From contig RDEW01000070.1 of NCBI GenBank assembly GCA_011109175.1, positions 104,486 through 168,485 on the forward strand: a stretch of DNA of 64,000 nt, read 5' to 3'. The notes under the pieces were generated by a model, which had not been told where the DNA came from, searched no databases, and worked only from the letters and a program-made list of their open reading frames with translations. Position 1 is the first letter of the stretch. The number at the start of each line of letters is the position of its first letter. The stretch is from Dicyema japonicum. Lineage: Eukaryota; Animalia; Dicyemida. Shown here piece after piece: positions 29,526 through 62,373 of this stretch. The position numbers and the translations under genes are program-made.

Positions 29526-30463
29526 ATGAAATTTAAAATGATTTATCATCACTTTAATACTAAATTGGTCATACTTTTGGTTATTTTTTCGACCGCGATT
29601 TTTGTTTTTAAATCTCACAGGGAAACGAAATCTTATAAATTTTAACGTAACCAAAGAAAAAAATGAAAACGAGATCTTGTTGGTCAGTGCTTGTTACGAC
29701 ATTGGAAAAGTCGCAAAATATGGCTTTACTCGTAAACCAACAGATTATTATAAACTTATGGAAAACTTTTTCTACATAAAAAACCACATTGTGTTTTATT
29801 CAGATATCAGAGTATTCTTAATTACATGAAAGCGATCAGAAGAGATCTTCCTACAACTCTGATATACTTGGATAGAAAAGAACTGCTTGGTTTTAAAAAT
29901 ATTGATGAAATAAAACATATCTTCACCCTTCCTGGGTTCGGTAAATTTTTTTTGGAGACTGCAAATTATAAATACGCTGCATCGTGAATTCTAAGGTTGA
30001 TTTTCTAAAACGAACAATCAAACTCTTCTCAAACAAATTTTCATATATTGCTTGGATTGATGCCGGTTATTTGCGGGACGAAAAGTATACGGAAGAGGTC
30101 ATTTTGAAAAAATCCAAGTACGTTGACGATACAAGAGTGACTACTAGTATAGTTGTTCCTTTTGGTGATTACTCAATGGAAAAAATCATTAAAGAAGCAT
30201 CAGTATGGATTCCAACAGGATTTTATGTTGGTCAGATTAATATAATTAACGAATTTTGTGATGCTTACGAAAAATTCTTTTACGAACTATTATCGAGGAA
30301 GTTAATTGCAACTGATGAACAAGTCCTGTACTCCATGTTTACGACCGAGGGACTTACATTAAGGAGTGATTCAGTTAAACTGAATATATTTCATTGTAAT
30401 TATTTTGGACTTATTACACTTCTAACAAACGTTAAAACGGCGAATTCCTGTCATTCCTTATAA
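29526..30463 (+). pseudogene. HtrL/YibB-family putative glycosyltransferase, copy 1 (three apparent frameshifts)
   Basis: ATG at 29526, hydrophobic N-terminal anchor, collinear with 41664-42602. Small deletions at ~29640, ~29806 and ~29981. Either a pseudogene or sequencing error. Confidence 0.75.
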
Positions 30464-31179
30464 TTCGTTTTTATTAATAATATTTGGTTTTATATTTTTA
30501 CATGATTTATATGTATCATTATTTCACTAAATGTCTATTTAGTGAAATAATAGATGAAAGGAGTCCACAGGGATTCATTTAAGTTCTCTGTTATTCAACG
30601 GATTTCCGTTTCCGAGATCGCCAAATACGAGATCTCTGATATACGCAGACGATGTACTACTGTCTGACGTGTCGTGATCGAATTTATATGGAAGAGATAA
30701 AAGACTTGTGCGGGCTCTAGGGATTAAATTGTAAGAAGAAAAATTTAATGCAATTAAGTTTTTCGGTCTAAATGAAAAATCGTCAGAAAAGCTCCCTATG
30801 TGGAATCAACAAAGTATCTCTGAACAGCTTTTGGAAAAAACTGGGAGTACGTTATATAAGTATTCATATGCTTATGAGTAACACGTGAGTGAATTTACTT
30901 AACTGACAAATTAATCGATAATAGTTTTTTTACTGCATATATTTCCTTCTCATACAAATGGTTTGGTTTAACACTATGATACTTAGATTTCCCCAACCCT
31001 AACCATTAAAGTAAAAAACACACTACAGTCGACCTCTAATTGAAGCACGTAATGTCCGAAATCAGAGGTTTCTCCAAAACAAAGGTTTTCCATATAACTT
31101 GTCCGCGGACACGCTTACTATAATAAGTTATTTTTTTTTATATTTATATTAATTTTTTTAAATAATAACAATTTATTGA

Positions 31180-31698
31180 AGAATAAAACCAAATAGTTAA
31201 AGGCTACTGGCTGATCTCAGGATTGAGAGCGCATTTCCCCTTACGATCAGTAAGGAGATGCGCTCAATGAGCCAGCCCTTCTCTCTGACATCCCTCCTCC
31301 TTTTAGCGACTAACGATCCAATTTTGTTGAGCAGGGCTAACGACCTGCTTCCTATGACTCCCGAAGTTTCGACTGCGACTGGTTCAAATGTGTACTGCTC
31401 GCCGAGGCATGTGTACTTCTTTGCTTTAAGTATTTCTGCTTTCTCTGCAGCTGAGCCTGGATTTGTCGCACTCATTGTAATATTGGAAGGCGAGAAGCTA
31501 TCTACGCAGGTGGCATCCCAGGCCAGGTACTTCCCAGCATCCCACGGGAACAGAGTCGCTCCATCCGGCCTTCTGTTTGCCGTGGCAAGCCCTAGGGGCT
31601 CTATCTGGACAGGGAATCCGGCAGCTTCTAGTCCCCACGCAATAACCTTGTTGATTGCACTATGTCTCAGGCTCTTTCGGCAGGAAAGTGCGTATTAA
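31180..31698 (-). mobile_element. CRE element, third subfamily, 3' fragment
   Basis: RRPDG, WDATCVDSF, KAKKY, FEPVAVETSG, ERISLLIVRGNA. A decayed relative lies at ~63290-63430. Confidence 0.85.
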
Positions 31699-33029
31699 TT
31701 TTTTATTCCTACCGTCACTTCCTTTTGAATTGTTAAAAATCATGAAAATATTCTGCAATCAATCAAAAATATTTTGCCTCTGGGGTTTCCATCAAACTTA
31801 AAGTTTTTAATATTGATGGTTCACATTCTATATCCTCAGAGATTTATTTATGCAATTAAAGTGAGATTGTAGAAAAATTTTTTGCTAGCAGTTAAAAATA
31901 ATATCAACATTACTCCATGCATCTGAGATTGTTGTTGCCACTTACCGCAAATTAATTTGGATAGAGATTCGATAAACAATTCTGATCCTCTCGAAAAACA
32001 TAAGAAATCGATTAGATAGTTCAAATTATTATCTTAAAAATTATTAATGATTCCAGCGTCCAAGGATTGAAGAAATAACGTCGTATTTTTTGGCAAAAAT
32101 AAAAAAATCGATATTACTAAAAATTGATATTTTGTGGCAGCGTTATCCAATAACCAGGATTTATTCTTTATTGAAAATTCATTTGTTCATTAATTTTTTG
32201 AAGCCAGGATGCATAAATGTTTTTTTTTCATCCACGCATTTTCTAAAGGTGTTTTCCCCTAAAATAGAAGTGCATACATAGATGAGCTTGGAAGACTCTC
32301 TTCTAAAACTATGTCTTCCATAAAGTCCCTTTTCTTCCAATTAACACTCCTAGGTAGTGTAAGTTAACGGCATCTTTTACTCAACAACTATTTTTCACCT
32401 CCTTTTGTAATTTAATTTTTATCCCACATATGAAGGTTTAGATTACCTTAGAGACATACCATGTTCTCGACAGATAACTTTTCTTTTGGAATATTTTACT
32501 ATCTCGTAAAAATATCTTATGTCTGATTTTGGGAGAAGTTATACGATGTTATATCCTGCATCATTAGTTAGTAGCCCCGACCTCCCTATCTTGTAGAAGG
32601 TTTGCCGTCTCAGTCGTCTGTACGTCTACTCACTGGAGGTCACATATCTTCGATGCTCACAGGAGGTTCAGGACAGGAAAAAGCTTCTCGTATCATCATT
32701 GATAGTTAGTCTGATAATGCAACCCAAGAAACGGACTTGTTTCTAGAGAAGAAGTGCCCAGAACGTAATTACGATAGAGTCTTCTTTGATTCTTTGTCGA
32801 GAATAGTCTTCGAGTCATCCACCAATGGAGGCGGGCTTGGTTAATAATTATAATATAAATATCAATATTGGCCTTATAACTGTTTCAACAAAATTTAAAA
32901 TTGCTTTTATATGTCTAATTGAACTTAAGACAAAAAATATCCTGGCGAATTTTCTAGCAACAGGTTTTTATCGAATTTTTCGTCTAAGAAACATTTCACA
33001 TTAGCAGGTTTTATTATTTTATTACATTT

Positions 33030-33200
33030 GAGACGTCTGGTTCCCTTGCGCCTGCGAACGCTGGAATTCTTGAGTCGTCTAGGGAATCGGATCGCTACAC
33101 GAAAAAAGACCCTCGTGAGCGCTGCTGGTTATTTGAGCGAATCTCGCTCGCTATCCTAGAGAGATAGCCACGCAGTCATGGCAGCTTCTATATAACCGTT
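33030..33200 (+). mobile_element. CRE-like 3' remnant
   Basis: SRLGNRIAT..KDPRERCWLFERISLAIL, related to 36130-36320. Confidence 0.6.
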
Positions 33201-34015
33201 TACTCTATTTTCTTTCTTCATTCACAGATGGCACTGTAAAAATCTGATTTTCTCATTCCATTTACCGAATCTAGGATAAATAAGGTCACTAATGATCAGT
33301 CGAATATGATTTTCCTTGCATAAGTTGAACAGTAAAGTTTTCAAAACTTGTTGAAGGTATTGGATATAATTTTACTCTTCCTACGATTCACAAAAAGTTA
33401 AGAAAATTTCTTACCAGAAGGAGAAGTTGTTGAAAATTATCGTAAAAATAACTAAGATTTTTGATGGAAATTGAATTTTAATCAAATGGAATGGCAGGTT
33501 GGCACGAAATAGGATCATTTGCTCTCCCACTCCACTGGAGGGGTTTCCACAATTGCAAGGAATGGACGTCTTTTACATTTTATACTGGGTCCGGATGTAC
33601 TTGCGTGACCAGTTCCAGGTTGGCACAAAATAAAGACCATTTGCTCTCCCCCACTCCAGTGGAAGATTCTTTCCAACTGTCTACTGTTATCCTCTCGTAG
33701 GCTCCACAGGAAGGTTCGTACGCCATGCGTCACGAGACACGTTCTAAAATGCTATTTGAGGACAGTTGTTTGTACACATGCATGGATATTTCTATCGACT
33801 TCCAACTATCTCAGGTACCCCAGTAGAATTTATTCCTACAATCCATGTCATCACATAAGGAATAACATGGACTTTCATCAATACATATCCCTAATTCGTT
33901 TACGAGAAAAGCATACTTCCGCTTCTTCTCTATCTTTAAATTTTTTTTATATTTGATAAAATTTATAAAATAAATTTAAAATTATTATTTTCAAATCTGG
34001 TTCTTGTTAGTCGAT

Positions 34016-34803
34016 ATGTCAATAAATGATTGCTACCACGAAAATGGAGTAATTTTATTTTCAGGAGAAAGGTATATTAAAACAACACATAAACAGATAT
34101 TTAATCTACGCTAATAACGTAAAGGGCGAATTCAAGCCACAGAATAGTTACCTTCATTTTTTCGGGAAGCCGCTAACTGGTGAAATTTTTCTCACCTCGC
34201 ACAGAGTAATTTTAAATTTGATTTTGATGATTTTTCGCCATTCTGATCCAAGGAATGACTTCAAAACGCTCTCCATGCCATTTTTCTGTTTGAAGAAAGT
34301 CTCTGTTGAACAGCCTGTCTTCGGTGCGAACTACGTGGAAGGGTCCACTTTCATCCGCTATGAAGTTGACGACAGACCGATTCCGCTTACTTTCAAGTTA
34401 ACCTTCAAGCACGGCGGCGCTATTGAATTTGCTAAGTCGTTACACGTGGCTGCCCAAAACAGTACTTTGATTTTTATACTAGTAAACCACAATTTAAACT
34501 CCGGTATGTATCCAGAATTTCGACCTGCCGACGGGCCTCCACCATATACTGAGAACCTATATGGGGGATATAACACAGCATATGACTACCAGTATAATCC
34601 TCCAATCGATGAAACTCTTTATAATTTTGCTCCGTATAATGCCTTTCCGTCTGCTCCACCGGGTTTGTTGGTGGATGTAATTTGTAGCCAATTCTCTGTA
34701 CGTCTATGACTCTTCACCCCCATATCCTGGAGTTACAAATGAGCCTCGTACTGGGAATCCACCTCCACAGTATGGTTTCGTGGAGTATTATAAGAAGGCT
34801 TAA
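34016..34803 (+). CDS. WBP2: WW-domain-binding protein 2 (GRAM-like domain + PPxY motifs)
   Basis: ATG at 34016. Introns 34072-34096, probably 34206-34226, 34462-34482 and 34663-34687. Motifs SMPFF.LK.V.VEQPVFGANYVEG, FKLTFKHGGAIEF, PPPY, PPYPG, PPPQYG..EYYKK*. Needs one extra C at the CCCC run 34717-34720. Confidence 0.85.
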
Positions 34804-34837
34804 TTAATTATTGACTTTATTCTATAAATTAAATATT

Positions 34838-35300
34838 TTATTGCTTAATGGTGATTTTTCTTTTATTTTTTGATTTTGCTGATTCTTTGACTCTGATGTT
34901 TAAAATGAAGAGGGTTAGCACTTTATTGTCGTCATCGGGAGTTCTAAAAGTGGGTACAATAAGTCTGCTTAGACCACCAGGAGTGACTTGTCTTAGCAGC
35001 GCATCTTCTACTAGCTTCCTGATAGTGATTTGAGTAGACAATTCAATCCAGAATTTGTAGTTAGCTAACACACCGTTTTACAGGCTTCATACAATTTCTG
35101 GAGCTTCATAATCATATTGATCTCTGAAAGCGTCTGCATTCTGCAGTTACGTTTCTTTTAACTATACCTGTTTCCTTTACTTGAAAGGATCGAGTAAATC
35201 AATAAGATTGTGAAACTAATCGAATCTTATGGATTAATAGTAAACGCAGCCCGCAACTGACTATGGAGGTTTTATGTACTTTCTCTATGACAATCACCAG
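34838..35300 (-). CDS. Hypothetical spliced gene convergent with WBP2
   Basis: 77-codon terminal frame and micro-intron-like GT..AG segments upstream. Stop codon 35 bp from the WBP2 stop. No recognised domain. Confidence 0.3.
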
Positions 35301-35809
35301 TAGCTTAAACTCTCCTCTTCTTATTGATCAATTCGCTCATACACGCATAAATCAAAGATTCTATTATCACACACTTTTTTGTATTTATAATTTTATGTTA
35401 AAATTACAGCTGTAATGATTAGAATGAAAATGTTACTAAAGTTAAAGGTCAATATTATGCACTAACTGCCCACTGCGCTTCGCACATAGATATACTCTTA
35501 TCACTTGGGACTTGCTCACGCTGTATCTAACATAGTATTGATCTCCAAAATCTTATTTTAACATTCTAGAATAAATTATCAAATAAAATATTAAATGTGA
35601 TATTTCAAGGTTTTCTAAAGTTGTATTATAAAGTAAAGTCTTTTACTTAAGAACCCAGGATTACGAAGACGTTCCCTCTGATCACCACCACTTCGAGCTT
35701 CTGCCTCAACCAGAGTCCTTCGGAGGCTCTTTAGACTATAATCTTAATCAATAATTGAATGATAATCAAAAGTGTCATAAGTGCACGGCAAAAAGGTCTG
35801 AAGCCCCCT

Positions 35810-36075
35810 AGTTCGAATTTCGCTGTTGTAGACTCCAGCTGAAGGTTCCACGTATCAACGATGCTTTGTCTTGACGAATGACGCATTGCATTGCATTGCG
35901 GTACCGGATCGTCTATAAAGGACTCACAAATAAAAGACTCACACGCAAAAAAAAGAAAAAAGAAGTGAAAAGCATTCCTTGGTTCTCCCATTCTAAGATT
36001 AGTTATCATAATTTTTTTACTTAAATAAAGTGTGTGCTCTGCCTGGGCGGAGATATAGGTAATAGGCTCTCGTTT
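35810..36075 (+). mobile_element. tRNA-derived SINE, degenerate copy
   Basis: TTCGCTGTTG...GAAGGTTCCACG...ATTCCTTGGTTCTCC...TTACTTAAATAAAGTGTGTG...GGCTCTCGT, collinear with the other copies. Confidence 0.75.
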
Positions 36076-36129
36076 ATAGTGCGGTTTTTAACAGTCCCAA
36101 CAATTTCCCGATAATGTCAAATTTGTTAC

Positions 36130-36320
36130 TCTTGCTATGGAGAGTTCCGGATCCTACTCCCCTTCTACATTCGAGTTTTTCGGACGTCTAGGAAACCGGA
36201 TCACCTCATGCACTGGAGATCTCCGTGAACGCCACTGGCTGTTTGAGCGAATTTCGCTAGCAACTCTGAGAGTGAACAGCCACGCAGTGAGGGCGGCATC
36301 TGACCTAACTAATATTTTGT
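36130..36320 (+). mobile_element. CRE-like 3' remnant
   Basis: AMESSGS...FFGRLGNRI...RERHWLFERISLATLRVN. Confidence 0.7.
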
Positions 36321-36649
36321 CCTTATGTTTTTTAATAAAGTTATTTAAACCAAAAAAAATTAAGTAAAATGGTACAATTGGCTAAATAGATTTATATTAA
36401 AAATATTTATTTAAGATTAATATTTAATTCAAAAATATATAAAGTTGATAAATTAATAGTTTTTTATTAAAATAATTAATTCCTATTTTAAGATTTTCAT
36501 TTCATTCAGTTCAATAATTTTTCTGTTATATTTATTAAAAATTGTTAATGTGAGCCCTGACTTCGGTGAAACTACCGGATTCTCTATATTTGGGATTCTT
36601 TTATTAATAGCTTCTCTGATGTTTTTTCTTTGAGATACTCAAATTATTA

Positions 36650-37850
36650 CGTTTTTACTCATCGAATGGTTAAGTAGAATACTCCAATGTTCAGATTAGA
36701 TTAGTTAGTTAAGTAACCCCAGCCTCACTAACTTGCAAGAGGCCAGCATCTATTGAGTAGTACGCAGCAGATGTTGGTCGCTCCCATAGATCAGTCAGTT
36801 CCAATTCAGTGCCAATTCACGTCCCTTGAAAGAGAGGATTCTGATTGGTCTATTGGAGGAGGGGGTCGCTGTAATATTTTATTGTCTCCGAGTCTTCAGA
36901 TGCTTCTCGTAGAAACAAAATCGTGTGTCTGTTTCAGACGACTCCTATCATTGGGGATGGAAGAAATGGATGATAACATCCGAGACAGGTCACTGGTTGT
37001 CATAATAATTTTCCTTTCGTTTTGCGGCTTGCATAGGGAGTGGCAGAGATGTTCTAGACTGTAGGCTTGGGAGAGGAACTGCAGGGCTCTCATTTCCAGA
37101 TGGTCTCCAATTGGAAGGATCTTTGACTCCCAATGTAGATGATCGACAGGAGTTGATCTGAGACTGAGTTATTATTAAATCACATTTACTGGTATAAACT
37201 ATTTATTTCGAGCTTTTCGTTTAATTAGTTTATTTATTTTATTAACCCGAAATCATAAGAAAGAGGATAAAAGTTATCGTCTAATTAAGTGATCCCGTGT
37301 CCATACCAGTCCTTTTCCTGCGGTTAGCTTTGGAGTCCTGGATTAATCTCCAAGCGGGAAAGTTTCTTTCATATTTCGGGCAGGCGTCCATATATAGTCT
37401 GATGTGCGGTCCGGGGATGGTAAAGGGGTTTGCCATCTTGAAGAAGTCCCGGTGACGTTCCGTAGGGTATTCCATGATTGGGGACGTTTAGTGTTTTCCG
37501 CAGTAACGAGGTGGACGTCTTTTTCAACGATCTCAATAGAATCCTGAGACATCGAATTTTTAAAACCTCCAGCTAGATCTGTGCCGATATTGATAAAGGG
37601 ACAATCCATGTAGCACAGGAGTGCTCGATACTAGGTAGAACAAATTGTTTGTATAGAAACTCTAACGATGAATGGGAAGATACTCGAGAGTGAGTGAAAG
37701 CCTTGAGAATACCAATTTTCTTTTGGATCCTCGCGATTACTATGTCCACTTGATGGGTAAATGTAAGTAGGGGACCAGGATGACTCCAAGGATTTAAAGG
37801 GTCTTCTTAATGGAAAGCGGGGAGTCAACAATGTTATTCCTTATGTTGCC
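36650..37850 (-). mobile_element. Two stacked I-group LINE 3' remnants
   Basis: LPIGDHLEMRALQFLSQA..HLCH and LTDLWERP..A in the first; HIRLY..CPKY in the second. Each ends in the GG(G)WTCACTTAA(T/C)TA motif (36705, 37281). Confidence 0.6.
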
Positions 37851-39589: not shown

Positions 39590-39810
39590 AGAGGAGGAAG
39601 TACCAGAGAATTTCGGAGGAGTATATATTTGTTCCATTCGCGGTGGAAACGTCAGGAATCCTTGGCCCCCAAGCAGATGAGTTGGTTCGTAAGATCGGCT
39701 CCATGATTCAAGCTGTGACCAAGGATCCGCGAGAGACTGGTTGGTTCCGAGAACGTATCTCGTTGGCTATTGTTAGGGGAAATAGCATGGCCATTCAGAT
39801 GCCTTAATTT
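39590..39810 (+). mobile_element. CRE-like 3' fragment
   Basis: KRRKYQ..YIFVPFAVETSG.LGP, PRETGWFRERISLAIVRGNS. Confidence 0.7.
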
Positions 39811-39872
39811 TGAACTCTTTTTCATTAATAAATTTTCCTATTCTAAATTAAACTAGATTTGTCTTTAGTACA

Positions 39873-40630
39873 TTGAACTATGCATCTCTCCTTGCCTCTA
39901 AGAACAGATGCATTCAATCAGCGACTCAGTCCGCTCAACAAATGCTCGACAAGCAGGAACTATGGCTCTCGAAGTGGAGACTCGACACATCAGCAGCAAA
40001 GTCCTTTGTCACACTGTTTACCATCTACAAAAAACAGCTCTGTATCGAACCAAAAGACTTTATGAAGAACGAAGCTATCTCTATTAACAAAACACCGAAG
40101 ATTCTGGGAGTAACCTTTGATCAGGGACTAACCTTTATCCGGCATGTTGAAAACAAAGTAACTTCTGCTCTGAAAAAAATGAGAATTTTAAAAGTGCTCT
40201 CAAAAACATTTAGAGACCAAACTAATGTCCTTGCCACGATTTATAAACAATTTGTCCGACCAACGATGACGTATGCACGTCCTTCATGGGCAATGCAGAT
40301 GTCACGATCTTCCTCATTGAAATTATCCGCAATCGAGGAGACTGCAATAAAGTTAATTGGACCAGAACATAATATCCAACCCATTGAAAACTTTTTAATC
40401 GAACTACAGCGGAAACTATTAAAGGAAGCTATTCTACAGAGCTGCCCTCTATTCCATATACTATCGAATTATCTACAATCATACAGAAATTTTGAGCCTA
40501 TGCCATGTCCAATAAGAAAAGCTGTTCAGGATTCTCGATCCCGCCGGACTCGTCCTCACCTTTGTCGGTCTGGGATCACTTAGTTAGATGAGAACTTTTA
40601 TTTCTTTCTCTTTGACCAGTGATCCTGGGA
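39873..40630 (+). mobile_element. I-group LINE RT C-terminal fragment with internal deletion
   Basis: WLSKWRL..SAAKSFVTLFT, KTPKILGVTFDQGLTF..HV, LATIYKQFVRP.MTYA.P.W. Ends in GGGATCACTTAGTTAG. Confidence 0.75.
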
Positions 40631-41663
40631 AGTAATAATAATCTCTTACGCATGTGATATCTGGGGCCCATTCATCTCTTAAACAAATGTCTTGAAGATT
40701 AAGGCTATCGCAAAAAAAGCTTTCAAAATCACGGAACTCTGGGTTCTGAAGCGTTGCAGCCACCAATGCCTCTTGAAGCCATGATACGGATGAACCATGA
40801 AACTCAAGCATATTAAAAATTTGTTGACAATAAAGAATGATAAATAATATAGAAAACATACTAATATAGCTAATTCTGACTCCATTAACCACAAACAAAG
40901 TCATATTAATAATCATCACAAATGTGCAGTTTCAACTGATTATTCTTTGTGTTCTGTCAATTTTGGGAGGAACGAGATTCGAATTTAGATCGTAAACGAA
41001 TCTGTTCGTTGTTAAGAATTTTAGGTTTCTAATGTCTCTGACTCCGTCACGTCAACTATCCCCATAAGAAAAATGAAGACAACGTTTAATCTAAACATAT
41101 CTCGCAATAGAGGTACGTCACCAACTCAACATTTAGACGAGATGACTAACTGCTATTTAAATTTCTATTCAAACAAGTGATCTTCTGTATTTCACGCTCT
41201 TCTGATCTTTGGATTCCTTATAAGCATGACCTGGGTCTGAGACTGAAGCGGCCAATTTTTTATGAAAGTATGTATCAACCTACGTAACGTCCTAAAACAG
41301 GTTCCGACCATTAGCAATAGGTAATGTTGTCTCAGTGTCTGAGCGTTTGCCATCTTTTCGGGTGAGACCAACTGGCTCCTAAATGAGGTGGCAATTCATA
41401 AACTGCATTTCATTTCCATGGATAACGTTGATTTCTGTATTTATTGTTAACCAATTTTAACTAAAAATCAAGATTTGGTAAAAATCAGCGTTTCTTAATT
41501 TTAATTCTACCAATCCATTCGCTGATTTTGAGATTATCTTAAATTTTTCTCAAAAAACCGCAAACATTAAACGGATCGATGACCACAAATATTACAGTTA
41601 TAAGAAAATTTTCATAAAATCTCATTAAATATTGATAATAAGAGCATTTGAATATATAATTTT

Positions 41664-42602
41664 TTGATGAGATTTAAAACACTTTTCTATCACAAAAGAA
41701 ATATTTTGATTTTGATAATTTTTTTGACAGCGATTTATGTTTGTAAATATTTCAAGGTAACGAAGACTTACAAAATTTATAATGTCACCAGAGAGACAAA
41801 TAATGACGAGATCTTATTGGTCAGTGCATGTTACGATATTGGAAGAGTTGCAAAATATGGCTTTACTCGTAAACCAACCGATTATTATAAACTTATGAAA
41901 AACTTTTTCTACATAAAAAACCATCTTGTGTTTTATTCAGATGATCAGAGTATTCTTAATTACATGAAAGCGATCAGAAGAGATCTTCCTACAACTCTGA
42001 TATACTTGGACAGAAAAGAACTGCTTGGTTTTAAAAATATTGATGAAATAAAACATATTTTCACCCTTCCTGGGTTCGGTAAATTTTTTTTGGAGACTGC
42101 AAATTATAAATACGCTGCAATCGTGAATTCTAAGGTTGATTTTCTAAAACGAACAATCAAACTCTTTTCAGAAAATTTTTCATATATTGCTTGGATTGAT
42201 GCCGGTTATTTGCGAGACGAAAAGTTTACAGAAGAGATCATGTTGAAAAAATCGAAGTACATTGATGATACACGAGTGACTACTAGTATAGTTGTTCCTT
42301 TCGGTGATTACTCAATGGAAGCAATCATCAAAAAGGCATTAGTGTGGATTCCTGGAGGGTTTTATATTGGTCAGATTAGTATAATTAACGAATTTTGTGA
42401 AGCTTACGAAAAATTCTTTTACGAACTATTATCGAAGAATTTAATTGCGACTGATGAACAAGTACTATTCGCAATGTTTACGACCGAGGGACTTAAATTA
42501 AGGAGTGATTCTGTAAAACTGAATATATTTCATTGTAATTATTTTGGACTTATTTCACTTCTAACTAATGTGACTACGTCCACTCTCTGTCATTCTCTAT
42601 GA
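41664..42602 (+). CDS. HtrL/YibB-family putative glycosyltransferase, copy 2, intact, 312 aa, intronless, predicted type II membrane protein
   Basis: LVSACYDIGR, KNHLVFYSD, IRRDLPTTLIY, Y..IVNSK..FLK..I, IAWIDAGY, WIPGGFYIG, FYELL...LIATDEQ follow E. coli HtrL motifs in order (VTAFFDIGR, ENEMIIFTS, IRNGKPTTVI, AWIDFGY, IIGG, DDDQ). N-terminal basic residues precede a hydrophobic stretch (ILILIIFLTAIYV). Confidence 0.8.
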   Translation: MMRFKTLFYHKRNILILIIFLTAIYVCKYFKVTKTYKIYNVTRETNNDEILLVSACYDIGRVAKYGFTRKPTDYYKLMKNFFYIKNHLVFYSDDQSILNYMKAIRRDLPTTLIYLDRKELLGFKNIDEIKHIFTLPGFGKFFLETANYKYAAIVNSKVDFLKRTIKLFSENFSYIAWIDAGYLRDEKFTEEIMLKKSKYIDDTRVTTSIVVPFGDYSMEAIIKKALVWIPGGFYIGQISIINEFCEAYEKFFYELLSKNLIATDEQVLFAMFTTEGLKLRSDSVKLNIFHCNYFGLISLLTNVTTSTLCHSL

Positions 42603-43128
42603 TTCGCTTTATTAGGAATATTTATTTGATTTATATTTTTACATATTCATTTTTGAAAATAATTGTTTTTTTTGTTCACAATGAAAGTTGTGCGAAAATT
42701 AATGTAATAATCAAAGTTCCAAGTGTTGATCAGAAGCTATAGGTAGCGACGTATCCCTATTTATATATGATTACTTCGCTTCATGATAGACGAAAGCTTT
42801 AATCTTTCCTTATCCGCTTGCATAGACCGAATGGTGACTCAGGACATTTGTGAAAACAGGATTTGTGGACATAGAACGTGTTGAAGGCATGTATGATTCA
42901 GATTTGAATATAACCGGCCTAAAATTGATGGAAATTGGAAGACTATCAGTCAGAAGGCTGCAAACCTTACAGCCCAGAAGATTTTTGAATTCAATCAATA
43001 TTTTAAAACGATTTGGAAACTGTTTTTATGCTTTTAAATTATCATAATAACAACTAGAGATCAACATTTCAGTAAGAATTATTCTTGTCATTTTCAGCAC
43101 TCTTACGTTTAGATGAAATGTTTTTGGC

Positions 43129-43726: not shown

Positions 43727-43809
43727 CTAGATATTGCTGTGTGTATTACTGTACATCTGAGTTAACTTAATTTGAATTTTATTAAACTTTTTTATTTAAT
43801 GCAAAAACT

Positions 43810-48159: not shown

Positions 48160-48800
48160 TATTATTATTATAAAGCACAACGTCTTGCCATTGGAAATGA
48201 CAAAACCAGTGCAGTACAAAACATTAATTTTTTAGTTAATTTTCTCCACTTTCCACGATCCTGAGCCAAATCCCTCAAGTAATCCAGGTCATCTCCTGTA
48301 GTTAGAGATAATCCTATTCTCTTCAGGTCTTCATTCAGTGTCGTTGCCAGTAATGCTCTCGGACGTCCTCGGAACTTCACCTCTTCGGTTTGAAAGTATT
48401 CCTCCATGGCAACATTAGCTGGAGTTTCGATATTTTTCCGTAGAATGTGTCCAAATAGGCTCCAACGAAATTCCATGATGTCTAGTGAAATCGGTTTAGA
48501 AGACGTAATAGAGTATAGTTCTTGACTTCTTGTTCTCATACGGTCCCAGCACGAATGAATCTTCCGTAGTTGTCCCCGATGGAAGGAGTTTAGTTTTTCA
48601 ATGTCATTAAGGGTTAATGACCAAAAACTTGCATTATATAGGAGTATTGGTTTGACTAACGAATTGTATAGTCGAGTTCTGATCTCTCGATTCAAGCCCT
48701 TCTTTCTTAGAAACCAATTTCTTTTCAAGTTGTATAAGGCCGTATTTGCTTTAATCTTCCGTGCAATGATGTCCTTCTTTATCTCCAAGCAGGGATCCCA
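48160..48800 (-). mobile_element. RTE-clade 3' fragment (206-aa open frame)
   Basis: RLYNSLVKPILLYNA..W, LNSFHR.QLR, RWSLFGHILR, FRGRPR, DLDYLRDLA..R..W, then a TAA tail. Confidence 0.85.
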
Positions 48801-52110: not shown

Positions 52111-55100
52111 TAAAAATTTCAGAAAGGAAGATATAAAGATTGGGGACTTCATACGTATAAAAAGAAACTTTGATAACAATCAACTGACAAAAAATTCCCA
52201 TTGGAGAGCTTTTTTGAGAGAGAGAAGAATACCAAGTGATTAAAGAGAAATTGCACTCTGTCATAGTAGAAAATTCTACAAAAAACAAATAGAAAATATC
52301 AAAGACCCGAATTAAAAAAATCAAAAATAATTAGATGTTTTTTACATTCCTTTATTTTCTCTTATGGATTTGGTTAAAGTCAATTTCTTGAATGGGTTAG
52401 GGTGAATTAAAATGGATTAGGATGTACTAGAGAATGAGTTAGGGTTAATTAGAGAAAGTGTTAGGGTGAAATATAGCATCGGTTGTGTCTATACATTCAT
52501 AAAGTTTATTTTATTGACAGAATACGATGTTCGAACTTTAATTAAATTGACTTGTAATTTTTATCCATAAATTTTCATTTTATTTTTGACATTTATATAT
52601 TACTACTATAAATTAATCTTTAGTTAAAAGCTATCCAAATTTTATTATACATAATTCAAATATGAATTTTTTAGGGTTGGGTATAATAATAATAATAATA
52701 ATTTTTAATAATTATGGTGGGGCCACTGGTGAAAAAAGTGGTGCCACTTGTGCTACAAGACGAAGAAATATACTACGAGTTTGAGTAACATACTTCAGGC
52801 CTAATGGAGATGTGATGAAAGATGCTTTGTTTGTTCAGATTCACATAGAAGATCGCAGTGTCCAGTTAAAAACAATAATAAGTTTTTTGAATTGTGATTC
52901 ATCCATCGACTTTGCCAATTATGGAAGATGTCCCAAGGCTGTTGAAGCTAACATAGCGAAAAAAAAACAAAATTGACCAAAAAGGAAAGAATCGAATGGA
53001 AAATTATCTCTAAAACGAGAAAATGCCCTTAATGGAGAAAGTGAAGTTTCCAAAATTGGAACGAATAAGAAATTAAAACTGGCTGGAATAGGACATATAG
53101 TAAGAAACATTCTAAAAAAGAAACAGTAGAAGCTTCAATACAGAGAAGAGAGGGCAGCCACCGAAAAAAAAACCAGAAGTAGTCAGGATAACCCTGATTA
53201 ATGCCCGTTCTCTTTGAAACGGGCCTCAGTGCTGGTTGCTATAGCCAGCACGATCCAGATGGAAGTTCTAATTATAAACGAAACTAAATTATGGAAGATG
53301 CCCAAGGCTGTTGAAGCTAACATTGCGAAGAAAAACAAAATTGACCAAAAAAGGAAAGAATCGAATGGAAAATTATTTCTAAAACGAGAAAATGCCCATA
53401 ATGGAGAAAGTGAAGTTTCCAAAATTGGAACGAATAAGAAATTAAAGTCAGAGTTTAGAATGTATGGGCAGACTGGCTGGAATACGACATATAATAAGAA
53501 ACCTTCTAAAAAAGAAACAGTAGAAGCTTCAACACAGAGAAGAGAGTGGTGCTCTTAAGAAGAGAGGGCAGCCACCGAAAAAACCAGAAGTAGTCAGGAT
53601 AACCCTGATTAATGCCCGTTCTCTTTGGAAACGGGCCTCAGTGCTGGTTGCTATAGCACGATCCAGATGGAAGTTCTAATTATAAACGAAACTAAATTGA
53701 AGCACATGGATTGGATTTAGCATCTGAAATTGATGACGAATACGAAAGAAAAACAAGAAGAATCGGTGATTTATTACATTGCTTGTGGAAACTCGCATTG
53801 TAATTGGGGCTTTTTACGGAGAAGAGACATACGGTGTCTCATGATAGTGCCCCGATATAGACGACCCTAAATTTTGGCTTTCCTCTTTAGTTAATGGCTC
53901 TTACCTTGTTTAGTTAGTTGGGGTTTTGCGAATAAATCATGTTATCTGTTATCTGTTAATAATAATAATTTTTATGGATTTTTTTATGGTTGGCTTTATT
54001 TTTGCAACCCTTAATTGCAGCATTTATTTCTTCCAGCGTTATAGGATGACACAAGGGACCATTATTATTATTAACTAGCCATTAACTAAAGAACTAGAAG
54101 AAAACCAGTGGTGCCACTAATGAAAAATTGGTGCCACTGGTGCTACAAGACGAAGAAATATACTACGAGTTGAGAAACATACTTCAAGCCTAATGGAAAT
54201 GTGTTGAAAGATGCCATGTTGGTTCTGATTCACATAGAAGATCGCAGTGTCCGGTTAAAAACAATAATAAGTCCTTTGAATTGTGGTTCATCCATCGACT
54301 TTGCCAATTATGGAAGATGTCCCAAGGCTGTTGAAGCTAACATAGCGAAAAAAAAACAAAATTGACCAAAAAGGAAAGAATCGAATGGAAAATTATCTCT
54401 AAAACGAGAAAATGCCCATAATGGAGAAAGTGAAGTTTCCAAAATTGTAACGAATAAGAAATTAAAACTGGCTGGAATAGGACATATAATAAGAAACATT
54501 CTAAAAAAGAAACAGAAGAAGCTTCAATACAGAGAAGAGAGGGCAGCCACCAAAAAAAAACCAGAAGTAGTCAGGATAGCCCTGATTAATGCCCGTTCTC
54601 TTTGGAAACGGGCCTCAGTGCTGTTGCTCTAGCCAGCGACATCCAGATGGATGTTCTAATTATAAACGAAACTAAATTATGGAAGATGCCCAAAGGCTGT
54701 TGAAGCTAACATTGCGAAGAAAAACAAAATTGACCAAAAAAGGAAAGAATCGAATGGAAAATTATTTCTAAAACGAGAAAATGCCCATAATGGAGAAAGT
54801 GAAGTTTCCAAAACTGGAACTAATAAGAAATTAAAGTCAGAGTTTAGAATGTATGGGCAGACTGGCTGGAATACGACATATAATAAGAAACCTTCTAAAA
54901 AAGAAACAGTAGAAGCTTCAACACAGAGAAGAGAGTGGTGCTCTTAAGAAGAGAGGGCAGCCACCGAAAAAACCAGAAGTAGTCAGGATAACCCTGATTA
55001 ATGCCCGTTCTCTTCGGAAACGGGCCTCAGTGCTGGTTGCTATAGCCAGCACGATCCAGATGGAAGTTCTAATTATAAATGAAACTAAATTGAAGCACAT

Positions 55101-55310
55101 GGATTGGATTTAGCATCTGAAATTGATGACGAATACGAAAGAAAAACGAGAAGAATTGGTGATTTATTACATTGCTTGTGGAAACTCGCATTGTAATTGG
55201 GGCTTTTTACGGAGAAGAGACATACGGTGTCTCATGAGAGTGCCCCGATAGAGACGACCCCCAAATCTTGGCTTTCCTCTTTAGTTAATGGCTCTTTAGT
55301 TAATAATAAT

Positions 55311-56770
55311 AATGGTCCCTTGTGTCATCCTATAACGCTGGAAGAAATAAATGCTGCAATTAAGGGTTGCAAAAATAAAGCACCAGGGTGGGATTTTATC
55401 CCAATGAGTATTTTCAAGAACGCAGGCCCAATTTTGATTGAGTGCCTAAAAATATTATATAATTCTTCTTGGAGTTTTGGTCATGTTCCAGCTTATTGGA
55501 AACGAACAATTGTACGCATGGTTGTGAAAAAAGGAAAGCCAAGGTCAAAAGCAGATAGTTATAGGCCAATTAGCCTAGTCTGCTCAATATCGAAAGTTAT
55601 GGAAAAAATTGTTTTCAATCGTCTATCAAGGCATGTTGAGGATAATAATTTTCTCTCTGATAATCAACTGGGATTTCGGCATAAAAAAGGGACTGGAGAT
55701 TGCTTTAAAGAGCTAAGATCTGCAATCGAAATTTCACGAAATAAAAAGGAATTTCTTACAATAGCATGTTTGGATATAACAAAAGCGTTTGACAGTGTTT
55801 GGCACTTTGGACTTGTTGATACGTTGTCAAAAGCAGAAATTGGGAAAACTGCGTTATTATGGATAGAAAACTTTCTTTCAAAAAGAAAGTCATATATACG
55901 TGTTGGAAATTTAATTTCAAAGAAAATTGAATTGCGAAGAGGAGTTCCACAGGGTTCAATTCTCAGCCCGCTACTCTTCAATTGCGTAATGAGAGATTTG
56001 CCAAAAACAGAGAGCGTAAATAGTCAAATGATTATTTATGCTGATGACATTCTTGTGCTTGATTCAAGCATGAATAAACAAATTTCATGGAAAAGGGTGG
56101 AATCCCATATTACTAAGATTGGAAAGTGGTGCCAAAACAATGGGTTGACTCTATCGAGGGAAAAAACAACAGTCACTTGGATTGCAAGTAAAAGAAAAAA
56201 TATTAATCAATGTGTGAATACTGGGGATATAAAAATCTCTGAAACATTGAAGTATCTCGGATTGTTGATAGACCGAAGAGGATCTTTCAAGGAACATATT
56301 AAAACACGAAGAAAGAAAGCTACAGGAATGTTGAAATCTTTAATTCGATTTCATTTGGAGCCTGAAACTTTTCTTTTTGTGTATTCGGCGTGTGTTGAAC
56401 CATTCTTGATATATGGTTATCAAGGATGGTTTAGAACAAAAGAAAGTGATGTCTTTGTCAAAAAATTGGAAAAGTCCAGAAGATTTGCGATTAAATTGGC
56501 ATATGGACTGGACTTAAAATCCAATATCGAAGAGGATTACGACCTGAAAGTCAGAAAGATAGAAAAATTATTACATCACTTATGGAAAATGTGATGTAAT
56601 TTTTGGGGTCCAAACGAAGTAGAGACATGTGGTGTCTCATAAAATGACCCTACACGATGAATACAAACCCACTTAATTAGTTTTGGTTCAGGTTTTGGTT
56701 TCTTTACAGTAATTAGTTTTGGGGTTTGTTAGAAAATAAAATTTGTCTTGTCTTTGTCAATAATAAACCT
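55311..56770 (+). mobile_element. I/Jockey-group reverse transcriptase, open frame (part of ORF 55197-56594), no endonuclease
   Basis: KAPGWD, YRPISL, QLGFR, CLDITKAFDSVWH, GVPQGSILSPLLFN, YADD, YLG. The RT begins straight after the (AAT)4 tail of the upstream module, and the ORF's TTG start lies in that module's 3' end. Confidence 0.85.
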
Positions 56771-58197
56771 GGTATTTTTGGTGCACTTGGTATTTTTAGG
56801 TGGTGCCACTGGTGAAAAAAGTGGTGCCACTTGTGCTACAAGACGAAGAAATATACTACGAGTTTGAGAAACATACTTCAGGCCTAATGGAGATGTGTTG
56901 AAAGATGCTTTGTTTGTTCAGATTCACATAGAAGATCGCAGTGTCCAGTTAAAAACAATAATAAGTTTTTTGAATTGTGGTTCATCCATCGACTTTGCCA
57001 ATTATGGAAGATGTCCCAAGGCTGTTGAAGCTAACATAGCGAAAAAAAACAAAATTGACCAAAAAGGAAAGAATCGAATGGAAAATTATCTCTAAAACGA
57101 GAAAATGCCCTTAATGGAGAAAGTGAAGTTTCCAAAATTGGAACGAATAAGAAATTAAAACTGGCTGGAATAGGACATATAGTAAGAAACATTCTAAAAA
57201 AGAAACAGTAGAAGCTTCAATACAGAGAAGAGAGGGCAGCCACCGAAAAAAAACCAGAAGTAGTCAGGATAACCCTGATTAATGCCCGTTCTCTTTGGAA
57301 ACGGGCCTCAGTGCTGGTTGCTATAGCCAGCACGATCCAGATGGAAGTTCTAATTATAAACGAAACTAAATTATGGAAGATGCCCCAAGGCTGTTGAAGC
57401 TAACATTGCGAAGAAAAACAAAATTGACCAAAAAAGGAAAGAATCGAATGGAAAATTATTTCTAAAACGAGAAAATGCCCATAATGGAGAAAGTGAAGTT
57501 TCCAAAATTGGAACGAATAAGAAATTAAAGTCAGAGTTTAGAATGTATGGGCAGACTGGCTGGAATACGACATATAATAAGAAACCTTCTAAAAAAGAAA
57601 CAGTAGAAGCTTCAACACAGAGAAGAGAGTGGTGCTCTTAAGAAGAGAGGGCAGCCACCGAAAAAACCAGAAGTAGTCAGGATAACCCTGATTAATGCCC
57701 GTTCTCTTCGGAAACGGGCCTCAGTGCTGGTTGCTATAGCACGATCCAGATGGAAGTTCTAATTATAAACGAAACTAAATTGAAGCACATGGATTGGATT
57801 TAGCATCTGAAATTGATGACGAATACGAAAGAAAAACAAGAAGAATCGGTGATTTATTACATTGCTTGTGGAAACTCGCATTGTAATTGGGGCTTTTTAC
57901 GAAGAAGAGACATACGGTGTCTCATGAGAGTGCCCGATATAGACGACCCCAAATCTTGGCTTTCCTCTTTAGTTAATGGCTCTTACCTTGTTTAGTTAGT
58001 TGGGGTTTTGCGAATAAATCATGTTATCTCTCTGTAATAATAATAATAACGAAGTAGAGACATGTGGTGTCTCATAAAATGACCCTACACGATGAATACA
58101 AACCCACTTAATTAGTTTTGGTTCAGGTTTTGGTTTCTTTACAGTAATTAGTTTTGGGGTTTGTTAGAAAATAAAATTTGTCTTGTCTTATGGAATA

Positions 58198-58523
58198 ATA
58201 ATAAAGCCTTTTCACGAGAGCCATAGTATTTTATAGCTCCGCATAGGCAGGACACACACTTTATTTAAGTAAAGAACAGTTAATTTTAACTAATCGTAGA
58301 ACCAAGGAATGATCTTCACTTCTTTTTTTTCTTTTTCTTGTGTGAGTGTCCTTTCTAGACAAATCCAGTTCCGCAGTGAGTATTCACTGATGACGGCGTC
58401 ACTCGTCAAACCATTTCTGCATCGTAGATGCGTGGAACCTTCCACCAGGTGAACAGCAGCGAGATTCGAACCCGTAGCCTAAGCCACTTAAGCCCGACAC
58501 CTAACCACTACGCCACCCGGCTG
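58198..58523 (-). mobile_element. tRNA-derived SINE, full length (~325 nt)
   Basis: The minus strand begins GCCGGGTGGCGTAGTGGTTAGG (A box) ... GGGTTCGAATC (B box), with no well-paired acceptor stem. Core and RTE-like tail follow, then (TTA)n. Confidence 0.85.
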
Positions 58524-59594
58524 AACCCCAACTAACTAAACAAGGTAAGAGCCATAACAGATAACATAATTTATTCGCAACTAGTGTTGGGTATGCAGAC
58601 GCGAAAATCATAACAGATAACATAATTTATTCGCAAAACCCCAACTAACTAAACAAGGTAAGAGCCATTAACTAAAAAGGAAAAAGCAAAATTTGGGGTC
58701 GTCTATATCGGGACACTCTCATGAGACACCGTATGTCTCTTCTCCGTAAAAAGCCCAAATTACAATGCGAGTTTCCACAAGCAATGTAATAAATCACCGA
58801 TTCTTCTCGTTTTTCTTTCGTATTCGTCATCAATTTCAGATGCTAAATCCATGTGCTTCAATTTAGTTTCATTTATAATTAGAACTTCCATCTGGATCGT
58901 GCTGGCTATAGCAACCAGCACTGAGGCCCGTTTCCGAAGAGAACGGGCATTAACCAGGGTTATCCTGACTACTTCTGATTTTTTCGGTGGCTGCCCTCTA
59001 TTCTTAAGAGCACCACTCTCTTCTCTGTGTTGAAGCTTCTACTGTTTCTTTTTTAGAAGGTTTCTTATTATATGTCGTATTCCAGCCAGTCTGCCCATAC
59101 ATTCTAAACTCTGACTTTAATTTCTTATTCGTTCCAGTTTTGGAAACTTCACTTTCACCATTATGGGCATTTTCTCGTTTTAGAAATAATTTTCCATTCG
59201 ATTCTTTACTTTTTTGGTCAATTTTGTTTTTCTTCGCAATGTTAGCTTCAACAGCCTTGGGACATCTTCCATAATTGGCAAAGTCGATGGATGAACACAA
59301 TTCAAAGGACTTATTATTGTTTGTAACCGGACACTGCGATCTTCATATTGAAGAACATGAAATTTATTTAAATCAGAAAACCATATTTACAGTAAATCAT
59401 ATTTAAAACTGCCTTCCATCCAAAGTGGACCCCGCCGACATTATCGACGTTGCGTTGTCTCTCACGATTGCAACAGAGATCTTTTAAAATACGGAAATAT
59501 TGGATTATTAATTCTTGGAATGCTGCGTAATAATTTATTAGAAATTAAAAAAAAAAATTATTAATAGCTGAAAAGTAAATGAAGAATCTTAATG

Positions 59595-59790
59595 AGCCGT
59601 TGGTCCAATGACGGCTGAATTCTTGCAAGAACTCGGAGGATTGCTTGCCAGAAAGAAAAGGGATCAACGAGAAGGTTATGGCTAAGACAAAAGATTGGAA
59701 TAGCCATACTCCGAGGGAACTCGTTCGCAATCCACGCAGCAGGCTTCCTCAACTGATATTTGTTTAATTGTTAAAAAAAATTTAATTTCA
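59595..59790 (+). mobile_element. CRE second-subfamily 3' end
   Basis: Nearly identical to ~19327-19515. Confidence 0.85.
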
Positions 59791-61432
59791 AAAAAAAATA
59801 AAAATAAATATATTATTAAATTTATTTTAACAATTTTAACAATTTATTCATTATTTTTTAATGACGAATTAAAAAAAAGACTATCTAGTTCTTCAGTGAA
59901 ACATAAAAGCAACTGTTTTTTAAAATCGTAAAAATTGATTGATGCAACTAAATGTTACACTCATAAAATAGATTGTTTTATAAAATATTGAACTCCGTAT
60001 TTTCATCAATGATGGACAAAATCCAGATAGTTCACTTAATGTTCATTACGGTTGAAGGTTCTACGCATCTACGATGTTTCTTGAATTGACGAGTAACGGT
60101 GTAATCAGTGAGAAACTTGATTATTTTCAGAAATTCACGCGTAACTAAACTATTCTAATTATCAAATGAAGTGAAGAAAATTCAATTCATAAACTGTATC
60201 AATTTTTGTCATTTTTCTTGCAATCAATGTAAAAATTTGAAAATATAAAAGCAAGTTTTTGTGAATTCAGGTAGAGAATTGTTATGATTAGCCAAAAGCA
60301 TAAATTAAACTACTAGTAACAATACGTCCATAAGCTTTGAAATTTTTGTTCGCACCTGGACAATGAACACCTCATTTCAGAAAAAGGTCAAATAATGAAA
60401 AAATCACTTCTCTTGTTGGAAAAGCTGATAATAAAAAGATAATATTTTATGACATCCTGCATCATCAAGTAATAATAATATTTTTCTTTGTTGAGTAACC
60501 AATTTAAAAATGTTCCCAGTCATCCATGCACTTTTGAAAGCTGAATATAAAACACCCAAATCTTTAACATCGAAATTTTTGAAACAGCGAGATTTATTAC
60601 TTTTCCCAATCCTAATTTTTTAATGATTGGCCCTGATATTGGAAAATTATGTTCTCCGAGTTTCTGGAATATTTCAAATATTTGGTGATCAAATAATTTA
60701 TGCCTTTCTGATGTTGGTGCCCCGGTTTGGGGCTCCAGAAAATTTCCAAATTTGGAAATTAATGCTGAAAAATAAACTCCAAATGAAAAATGCGGGGTGC
60801 TCCACCGCCGGAGTGTTCCCCGAAACGGGGTCGGAATGTATATTAATCTGAATTTTATTTTGAAAATTGATTTTTAAGCTGTGGCATAGGTTTTATTAAA
60901 AAACCAAAAATTGGCGACAAAATAAAAAGGGAATGGGACGTAAGGTGATCCCGGACTTCTTACGCAGCCGTCTCATTTTTTATCTATTTCCCTCCGAGAG
61001 CCGACACACTTTTATATTTATATACACATCTTGAAAAGGATTAATTTGTTAATCCTAACTAAAGTTTATTTTTCGTTAATTCGACAATTTTTAATTAATG
61101 TGTATTTATTTTGTAAAAAAAATACAAAATTGAATAATTATCTGTAAAATAAAAACTTGTTAAATTTCTCTAATTGCATTTTACTCACAGAAGGTGAAAG
61201 GGCAAAATTCTCTAATTACATTTTACTCACAGAAGGTGAAAGGGCAAAATTCTCTAATTAAATTTTCAAAAAATTATGTTGAATCCGATTAAACGCCAAA
61301 TCTTTGACGCTTCTGACGTTAGAAATTATATATATCCGTATTTTTATATCCGCTTTAGCGAGCTAGAAGCGAAGCACACTGCGCTGATAATTGTAATTAT
61401 AATTTGGATATTGTAAGATAAATAATTTTGAT

Positions 61433-62373
61433 ATGAAAAATCAAATATTATATTATCGCTTTAAAAAAAGATTCGTCCTGATTTTTTTAATTTTGTTGAC
61501 TGCGATTTATTTTTTTAAATCTTTCAGTGAAACTAAGTCGTATAAAATTTATAACGTTACCAAAGAGAAAAATGAAAACGAGATTTTGTTGGTCAGTGCT
61601 TGTTACGACATTGGAAAAGTCGCAAAATATGGCTTTACTCGTAAACCAACAGATTATTATATCCTGATGGAAAATTTTTTCTACATAAAAAACCACTTGT
61701 GTTTTATTCAGATGATCAGAGTATGCTTAATTACGTGAAGGCGATCAGAAAAGATCTTCCTACAACTCTGATATACTTGGATAGAAAAGAACTGATTGGT
61801 TTTAAAAATATTGATGAAATAAAACATATCTTCACCCTTCCTGGGTTCGGTAAATTTTTTTTGGAGACTGCAAATTATAAATACGCTGCAATCGTGAATT
61901 CTAAGGTTGATTTTCTAAAACGAACTATCAAACTCTTCTCAGACAAATTTTCATATATTGCTTGGATTGATGCTGGTTATTTGCGTCAAGAAAAGTTCAC
62001 AAAAGAGGTAATGTTAACAAAATCAAAGTTCATTGATGATAAAAGCATGACTACTAGTATAATTGTCCCTTTCCATGATTATTCAATGGAAAAAATTATT
62101 AAAGGAGCATCAGTCTGGATTCCAACAGGCTTTTATATCGGGCAGATCAATCTAATTAACGAATTTTGTGAAGCTTACGAAAGATTCTTTTACGAACTAT
62201 TATCGAGGAAGTTAATTGCAACTGATGAACAAGTCCTGTACTCCATGTTTACGACCGAGGGACTTAAATTAAGGAGTGATTCCGTTAAACTGAATATATT
62301 TCATTGTAATTATTTCGGACTTATTTCACTCTTAACAAATGTTTCAACGGCGAACTCCTGTCATTCCTTATAA
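61433..62373 (+). CDS. HtrL/YibB-family putative glycosyltransferase, copy 3 (one apparent 1-nt frameshift at ~61697)
   Basis: ORFs 61433-61738 and 61699-62373 join into a full-length paralogue if CACTT is really CACCTT. Same anchor and AWIDAG/TDEQ motifs as copy 2. Confidence 0.78.

Follow-up and report, generated by a model that had tools for sequence, protein, structure and literature searches.

What do the HtrL/YibB-like genes of the dicyemid Dicyema japonicum encode, are they intact, and where did they come from? We addressed these questions in a stretch of 64,000 nucleotides (nt) of this genome (contig RDEW01000070.1, positions 104,486 to 168,485 of the forward strand), which we call the window and whose own numbering is used here. 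An open reading frame (ORF) scan and direct translation located three co-oriented paralogs on its + strand, at 29526 (copy 1), 41664/41667 (copy 2), and 61433 (copy 3). This arrangement had been proposed from the sequence alone, and the three genes are indeed there, with 84 to 89% DNA identity to each other across about 1 kb. The whole of our data is best explained, with a probability of roughly 0.75, by a dispersed-tandem gene cluster of the animal branch of PF09612 (HtrL_YibB), in which copy 2 works and copies 1 and 3 are decaying, and by a vertical origin of the family followed by expansion in dicyemids. PF09612 itself is labeled in Pfam as a bacterial protein of unknown function.

Copy 2 is an intact and distant member of PF09612

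Copy 2 (41667..42602, + strand) is the sole intact gene of the three. Its frame is unbroken over 312 codons (41664 to 42602). The ORF tool placed the start at a TTG at 41664, while the first ATG, at 41667, is the likely start and gives a protein of 311 amino acids (aa), in which a predicted signal anchor is joined by a very short stem to a luminal domain of the GT-A glycosyltransferase (GT) fold. Against PF09612, this protein scored 55.1 bits (E value of 1.2e-14), compared to a curated gathering cutoff of 24.1 bits, which confirms the family assignment previously made by eye. Positions 2 to 243 of the 267 in the profile align with residues 49 to 272. The cutoff was also passed by a piece of copy 3 (35.9 bits), by the 159-aa C-terminal piece of copy 1 (26.6 bits), and by 16 further places in the genome; a control search of 14 well-known genomes gave no match. 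The motifs DIGR, SDD, AWIDAG, PGG, and TDEQ follow one another in this order in copy 2, and DIGR/DIGK, AWIDAG, and TDEQ are present in the window copies. Furthermore, a conserved core is common to dicyemid and protostome members (V53, G60, Y74, W77, N86, R105, K157, W177, D179, G181, R184, W228, G231, Y248, and D264).

Copy 2 did not reach the NCBIfam YibB equivalogs, scoring 61.8 bits where TIGR02192 requires 264.9 and 32.1 bits where NF008462 requires 342. This wide miss indicates that it is a distant homolog of enterobacterial YibB and not an equivalog. It shares the Pfam profile, over about 240 of its 267 positions, with the bacterial proteins, such as those of the Escherichia coli waa region, Acinetobacter baumannii OCL5 (HtrL), and the Campylobacter jejuni lipooligosaccharide (LOS) locus, and bacterial members are associated with surface glycan loci (lipopolysaccharide [LPS]/LOS core) (PMC4172580). 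The literature that we searched holds no description of their biochemical activity. In the same literature, we found neither functional work on HtrL, YibB, or WlaTC nor any account of animal members; HtrL_YibB is mentioned only in tables, one comparing coral lineages by their domains and genes and others listing LOS loci. Animal members of PF09612 are entirely uncharacterized.

Copy 2 is predicted to be a type II membrane glycosyltransferase

The AlphaFold2 model of copy 2, built on an alignment of 130 sequences, reached a predicted local distance difference test score of 91.6 and a predicted template modeling score of 0.86. It consists of an N-terminal helix (residues 5 to 29) followed by an alpha/beta domain. 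Foldseek returned 222 matches in the PDB at an E value of ≤0.001, and the top ones listed were all GT6 enzymes, the best being the blood-group A/B transferases and bovine alpha-1,3-galactosyltransferase (alpha-1,3-GalT) (E value of 1.6e-7, template modeling [TM] scores of 0.40 to 0.46). With VIA-align, the best match was BoGT6a (4cj8_A; Z score of 11.8, 187 residues aligned at a root mean square deviation of 3.8 Å), followed by LARGE1, the UGGT catalytic domain, PBCV-1 A64R, XXT1, mannosylglycerate synthase, glycogenin, and LgtC; GT-A transferases made up most of the best 25 rows. The GT-A fold that had been anticipated is therefore found when the copy 2 model is superimposed on solved GT-A enzymes. 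Most of the solved structures closest to it are those of retaining transferases (GT6, GT8, and GT24). At the sequence level, a search of the PDB with the family profile gave nothing meaningful, its best hit being a helicase with an E value of 1.4.

The fold is shared over residues 43 to 309 of copy 2 with GT6 (human ABO GTA/GTB, bovine alpha-1,3-GalT, and Bacteroides BoGT6a), GT8 (LgtC and glycogenin), GT24 (UGGT), and GT34 (XXT1). Identity to the GT6/GT8-type enzymes is about 10 to 13% at the above-mentioned TM scores, and the candidate metal motif is W-x-D-x-G in copy 2 but D-V-D in these enzymes, so that we do not claim membership in GT6 or GT8. The best structural matches were giant-virus glycosyltransferases (Bodo saltans virus A0A2H4UUS7 and Pithovirus LCPAC202 A0A481Z629), with TM scores of 0.58 to 0.62, E values down to 2e-15, and 14 to 18% identity. 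These are larger multidomain proteins of 372 to 625 aa, and their structures are predictions only.

The best 19-residue hydropathy window of copy 2 spans residues 14 to 32 (mean Kyte-Doolittle value of 2.16, the next best being 1.09) and is preceded by basic residues at positions 3 to 13. The short basic N terminus and single hydrophobic segment described from the sequence alone are thus present, with no second segment, and together with the N-terminal helix of the model they give the type II-like architecture that had been suggested. In the predicted luminal part, Cys245, Cys291, and Cys309 are invariant among dicyemid paralogs, and copy 2 harbors three N-x-S/T sequons. These features fit a type II, Golgi-style glycosyltransferase, which would presumably reside in the Golgi.

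Copy 2 most likely encodes a working glycosyltransferase. The enzyme would have a short basic cytosolic tail, a signal-anchor helix, and almost no stem, with the GT-A domain on the luminal side. There, this domain would transfer a sugar from a nucleotide-sugar donor to a glycan of the secretory pathway, probably by a retaining mechanism. Donor binding, metal binding, and catalysis likely involve SDD (residues 92 to 94), K157, W-x-D-x-G (177 to 181), R184, and T-D-E-Q (263 to 266). Of these residues, D179 is invariant and directly follows the strand at 174 to 178. The model and the list of conserved residues provide a concrete starting point for the biochemistry of PF09612.

Copies 1 and 3 are frameshifted

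Unlike copy 2, the two other window copies are disrupted. The sequence-only reading had described three genes of about 940 nt without an intron, which holds for copy 2 but not for copies 1 and 3. Copy 1 (29526..30463, + strand) is a frameshifted paralog that lies in four reading frames and is a probable pseudogene. DNA alignment revealed that 2 nt are missing after 29639 and a single nt after both 29805 and 29980; the loss after 29805 turns GATGAT into GATAT and abolishes the SDD motif. Copy 3 (61433..62373, + strand) lies in two frames, with a 224-aa ORF at 61699 to 62373. A single 1-nt deletion after 61695 splits the anchor and the first 89 residues from the remainder, and copy 3 is probably a young pseudogene or else an assembly error. 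Both copies share a replacement of G231, a residue conserved in at least 90% of 130 family members, by T. The motif order proposed earlier thus stands in copy 2, while GG reads TG in copies 1 and 3 and SDD is broken in copy 1. Scaffold C374 holds a fourth copy of this subfamily, which likewise carries a 1-nt deletion.

The copies differ by more than 10%, far beyond the 1.24% heterozygosity of the D. japonicum assembly (PMC6736024), indicating that they are true paralogs and neither haplotigs nor assembly duplicates. Pairwise comparison of the four intron-free copies (copies 1 to 3 and that of C374) gave ratios of nonsynonymous to synonymous substitution rates (dN/dS) of 0.24 to 0.37 at dS values of 0.23 to 0.40. 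Such ratios indicate purifying selection over most of the history of the subfamily, and hence that the disabling mutations came late. Copies 1 and 3 are probably decaying duplicates.

The closest relatives outside dicyemids are protostome proteins

A word-index protein search with copy 2 alone gave no match, and one with an alignment of the paralogs returned only four proteins, labeled Octopus sinensis. A hidden Markov model (HMM) search identified 1,261 relatives at an E value of ≤0.001; for paralogs that carry an intron (see below), catalytic exon 2 alone was used. One "O. sinensis" sequence matched at 1e-124, after which the E values fell to about 1e-49. The best nondicyemid matches, at about 1e-49 to 1e-46, came from Lottia (183.8 bits), Haliotis (177.4 bits), and Octopus (175.8 bits), and the named relatives comprise Lottia, Haliotis, Lymnaea, Ostrea, the annelid Capitella, the nemertean Tubulanus, the nematode Soboliphyme, and Octopus. 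The top 150 matches are animal or unnamed in appearance. Similarly, the nearest ESM Atlas cluster (994 members) is eukaryotic and mostly molluscan. The members of Octopus bimaculoides, O. sinensis, and O. vulgaris lie on chromosome scaffolds of 148 to 177 Mb. The printed N termini of the Haliotis, Octopus, and Ostrea members show a hydrophobic segment followed by a stem, and the RefSeq isoform series of Haliotis and Octopus imply multiexon genes.

The protostome proteins (e.g., Lottia gigantea XP_009063932.1, Octopus bimaculoides XP_014782549.1, Haliotis cracherodii XP_071085616.1, Capitella teleta ELU07729.1, and Tubulanus polymorphus XP_074651950.1) resemble those of the dicyemid in belonging to the same Pfam family and in harboring the same conserved core, and some of these animals also have several paralogs. 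They are, however, only 22 to 31% identical to the dicyemid proteins, which form their own long-branched clade apart from them, and most have 40 to 110 residues before the catalytic domain, compared to about 20 after the membrane helix in the dicyemid.

A tree of 54 rows was computed with IQ-TREE under LG+C20. All D. japonicum paralogs, together with six RefSeq proteins labeled O. sinensis that lie on small scaffolds, formed one clade with support of 100/100. The chromosomal Octopus genes grouped with Lottia, and a branch with support of 98/95 separates them from a set of 21 rows that holds the dicyemid clade. Nesting of the dicyemid clade within that of the host was not found in this tree; the clade lies among protostome sequences. 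From these sequence comparisons, vertical inheritance within protostomes, followed by expansion in dicyemids, is the simplest reading, the family having presumably been passed down from spiralian or protostome ancestors. Nesting in a vertically inherited animal clade, which the sequence-only reading had set against its own proposal, is largely what we observed, but not at the ordinary copy number that it had coupled to it: the copy number is high.

A birth-and-death family in the D. japonicum genome

The genome searched comprises 67,542,437 bases in 377 pieces, corresponding to the published one of 67.5 Mb on 377 scaffolds with 5,012 genes and a mean intron length of 38 bp (PMC6736024). Searching it in six frames with copy 2 yielded 61 matching pieces. 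These merged into about 39 loci on 18 scaffolds, and the amplification suspected from the window alone is therefore real and genome-wide. By frame analysis, nine loci have a full catalytic exon in a single frame and four are open but shortened at the C terminus; frameshifts, stops, or fragments were found in the remaining 26 or so. Several of the loci form local clusters: C168 has seven, C339 has six, and the window has three. The genome paper and its supplements do not mention a PF09612 family (PMC6736024).

This is a birth-and-death family. It would have expanded in dicyemids by repeated DNA-level duplication accompanied by frequent gene death, leaving 9 to 13 of about 39 loci open. Dicyemids have lost most gene families, and one that continued to expand points to what matters in their life. 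A family of luminal glycosyltransferases suggests, moreover, a diversified surface glycocalyx in the renal sac of the host, although this surface-glycan role is put forward here as a conjecture. We also observed that the regions G000:C168:321248-331556 and 838919-895185 and G000:C339:22579-200855 are neighborhoods in which intact and broken copies are mixed, and these offer good material for dating duplications.

Most paralogs share a micro-intron that the window subfamily lacks

The absence of introns had been regarded as a trait of the family, but it is not: most paralogs elsewhere in the genome carry an intron of 22 to 23 nt. Eight paralogs share it at one position (GT[AG]AG...TAG), with a length of 23 nt, or 22 nt in the paralog of C290. 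Paralogs with this intron lie on scaffolds C157, C168, C257, C335, C68, and C290. In seven of the eight, a first exon of 25 to 29 codons, encoding Met, a few basic residues, and a hydrophobic stretch, is followed by the intron and by a catalytic exon of about 272 codons; the C290 paralog differs only by extra in-frame ATGs upstream. Since the intron, whose sequence is well conserved (e.g., GTAAGCCAATCATAATATTCTAG), shifts the reading frame and holds stop codons, its sequence dictates that it must be spliced out.

Conservation of the 23-nt intron (GTRAGCCAATCATAATATTYTAG) is strong in L003, L005, L009, L010, L011, L013, and L014 (e.g., L009:1475-1497), and in places it exceeds that of the adjoining coding sequence. 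This hints at tight sequence constraints on dicyemid micro-introns.

In the window subfamily, including the C374 copy, about 21 in-frame bases (7 codons) occupy the position of the intron. In copy 2, this segment (41757..41783, + strand; GTAACGAAG...TATAAT) encodes VTKTYKIYN and starts with GTAAC exactly at the expected 5' splice site. By hand count, 41757 to 41795 also forms a possible in-frame GT..AG unit of 39 nt. Aligned as genomic DNA, the window copies and the intron-bearing paralogs remain collinear from the anchor across the intron to the catalytic exon, the window copies being 2 nt shorter there (21 instead of 23 nt). Compared to the paralog intron, the 21 extra nt gave about 10 matches of 21 by hand count, which is not significant in AT-rich DNA, and it is for this reason that the case for exonization comes from position and length. 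We consider the odds about even that the intron has been read through into coding sequence in this subfamily. Within the dicyemid clade of the tree, copy 2 and the intron-bearing C290 paralog (locus L008) are sisters with support of 97/85, indicating that the intron-free state is derived. The ancestral dicyemid gene would thus have had one intron of 22 to 23 nt after its anchor exon, which the window subfamily lost, possibly by in-frame read-through.

A broader picture can be drawn from these data, albeit a tentative one that we hold to be rather doubtful as a whole. In a reduced genome of about 5,000 genes, this could be one of the largest multigene families, with fast birth and death, as would fit diversification of parasite surface or secreted glycans at the octopus kidney, and the window subfamily might in addition illustrate a 23-nt micro-intron made coding by the loss of 2 nt.

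Alternative explanations for the copies and for their origin

If the frameshifts were errors of assembly or consensus, all three window copies could be functional. The signature of purifying selection fits this, as does the fact that every break is a deletion of 1 or 2 nt, some adjoining short homopolymers, in a hybrid assembly to which gap closing was applied (PMC6736024). Yet the contigs are Illumina based (PMC6736024), and the errors would have to explain three breaks in copy 1, one in copy 3, and another in the C374 copy while sparing copy 2. In addition, the near-invariant G231 is lost in both broken copies, and more than half of the family loci are unambiguously broken, making gene death the norm in this family. 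We thus regard functional copies 1 and 3 as quite unlikely. The copies could also descend from a processed retrocopy of an intron-bearing parent that was then duplicated, as had been suggested. Indeed, the nearest paralog (C290) has the intron that the window subfamily lacks, long interspersed nuclear elements (LINEs) with reverse transcriptase lie between the copies, and homology between the copies is limited to a transcript-sized unit, beginning 15 to 120 nt before the ATG and ending 11 to 42 nt past the stop. This shared, gene-sized unit of about 1.0 to 1.1 kb nevertheless extends past the ATG into the upstream sequence, by up to about 120 nt, and at dS values of 0.23 to 0.40 AT-rich flanks free of constraint may in any case have diverged too far for alignment. 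None of the window copies is followed by a poly(A) tract (target-site duplications were not looked for), and instead of a clean excision we found the extra in-frame bases at the intron site in an alignment that is collinear through it. With no positive evidence in its favor, retrocopying appears unlikely, and duplication at the DNA level remains our preferred explanation.

Regarding the origin of the family, the sequence-only reading had favored horizontal acquisition with a membrane anchor gained later. A recent transfer from bacteria or giant viruses into dicyemids, followed by anchor gain and amplification, would agree with the definition of PF09612 on bacterial LPS-locus proteins (PMC4172580), with the fold common to giant-virus proteins, and with the presence of at most one intron per gene, compared to a genome mean of 6.2 (PMC6736024). 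However, the nearest relatives are protostome PF09612 proteins: closer homologs exist in many animals, several of them with a hydrophobic N terminus and a stem of their own. Dicyemid proteins are also no closer to the bacterial profile than those of other animals (55 bits compared to 44 to 60 bits), they miss the YibB equivalog widely, and the family has a conserved spliceosomal intron, which would not be expected in bacteria. Such a transfer is extremely unlikely and close to refuted, which removes an attractive but wrong story. Acquisition from the host, that is, from a cephalopod gene that then diverged rapidly, would be conceivable in view of the genuine PF09612 genes of octopuses and of a long stem branch that could hide the true position of the dicyemid clade. 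Still, the true Octopus genes group with Lottia and others in the maximum likelihood tree, beyond the 98/95 branch, and the HMM score of Octopus is no better than those of Lottia and Haliotis. Identity is about 27% to all three alike. We consider host-to-parasite transfer very improbable and retain vertical inheritance as our reading.

Several points weigh against the explanation that we prefer. The stem of the dicyemid clade is very long (1.77 changes per site), and its sister group, an unnamed sequence with a nematode group, may be a long-branch artifact. In an approximately unbiased (AU) test, a forced clade of dicyemids and Octopus was disfavored but not formally rejected (difference in log likelihood of 26.9, P = 0.083). 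As to the deep origin of the animal branch, the tree was computed without bacterial or viral sequences. For copies 1 and 3, the frameshifts may stem from errors in the assembly, and in copy 2 the classical DxD is represented by a single invariant Asp.

Proteins annotated as Octopus sinensis that group with dicyemids

The six small-scaffold RefSeq "O. sinensis" proteins (P0001 to P0005 and P0155; e.g., XP_029657963.1) are encoded by LOC115232266, LOC115229855, LOC115232297, LOC115232105, LOC115232272, and LOC115232269, on scaffolds of 207 to 483 kb. They interleave with D. japonicum paralogs in the tree, one of them being 70% identical to the paralog of G000:C179, and their clusters have no O. 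vulgaris or O. bimaculoides counterpart. Judging from these sequences, they most likely represent dicyemid contamination of the host assembly. We found no publication that reports such contamination. Contamination of this kind could mislead future claims of host-parasite transfer. Residues 1 to 47 of P0002 show about 60 to 70% identity to a repeat present at about 85 listed places in D. japonicum, such as G000:C344:113323-113454, which lies at about 8838 to 8969 of the window, on the minus strand. Our guess is that this repeat is part of a retroelement ORF, and the RefSeq model of P0002 probably fuses a fragment of it with a glycosyltransferase.

Sequences surrounding the window copies

Between copies 2 and 3, and outside the gene family, a LINE reverse-transcriptase ORF was identified at 55197..56594 (+ strand; RVT_1, E value of 2e-39). 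The spacers between the copies hold two further ORFs, at 39873 to 40583 (+ strand) and 48168 to 48788 (- strand), which have no Pfam match and look like pieces of LINEs. Finally, nearly all family members are preceded by an AT-rich motif similar to (G)ATAAATAAWTATTTTTAAAT, which often lies close to a TGATAA. In the window it lies at about 29490 to 29525, 41630 to 41666, and 61395 to 61432, and it is also found 10 to 90 nt before the ATG in L003, L009 to L014, L017, and L022. It may be a promoter element common to the family or belong to the core promoter of dicyemid genes in general.

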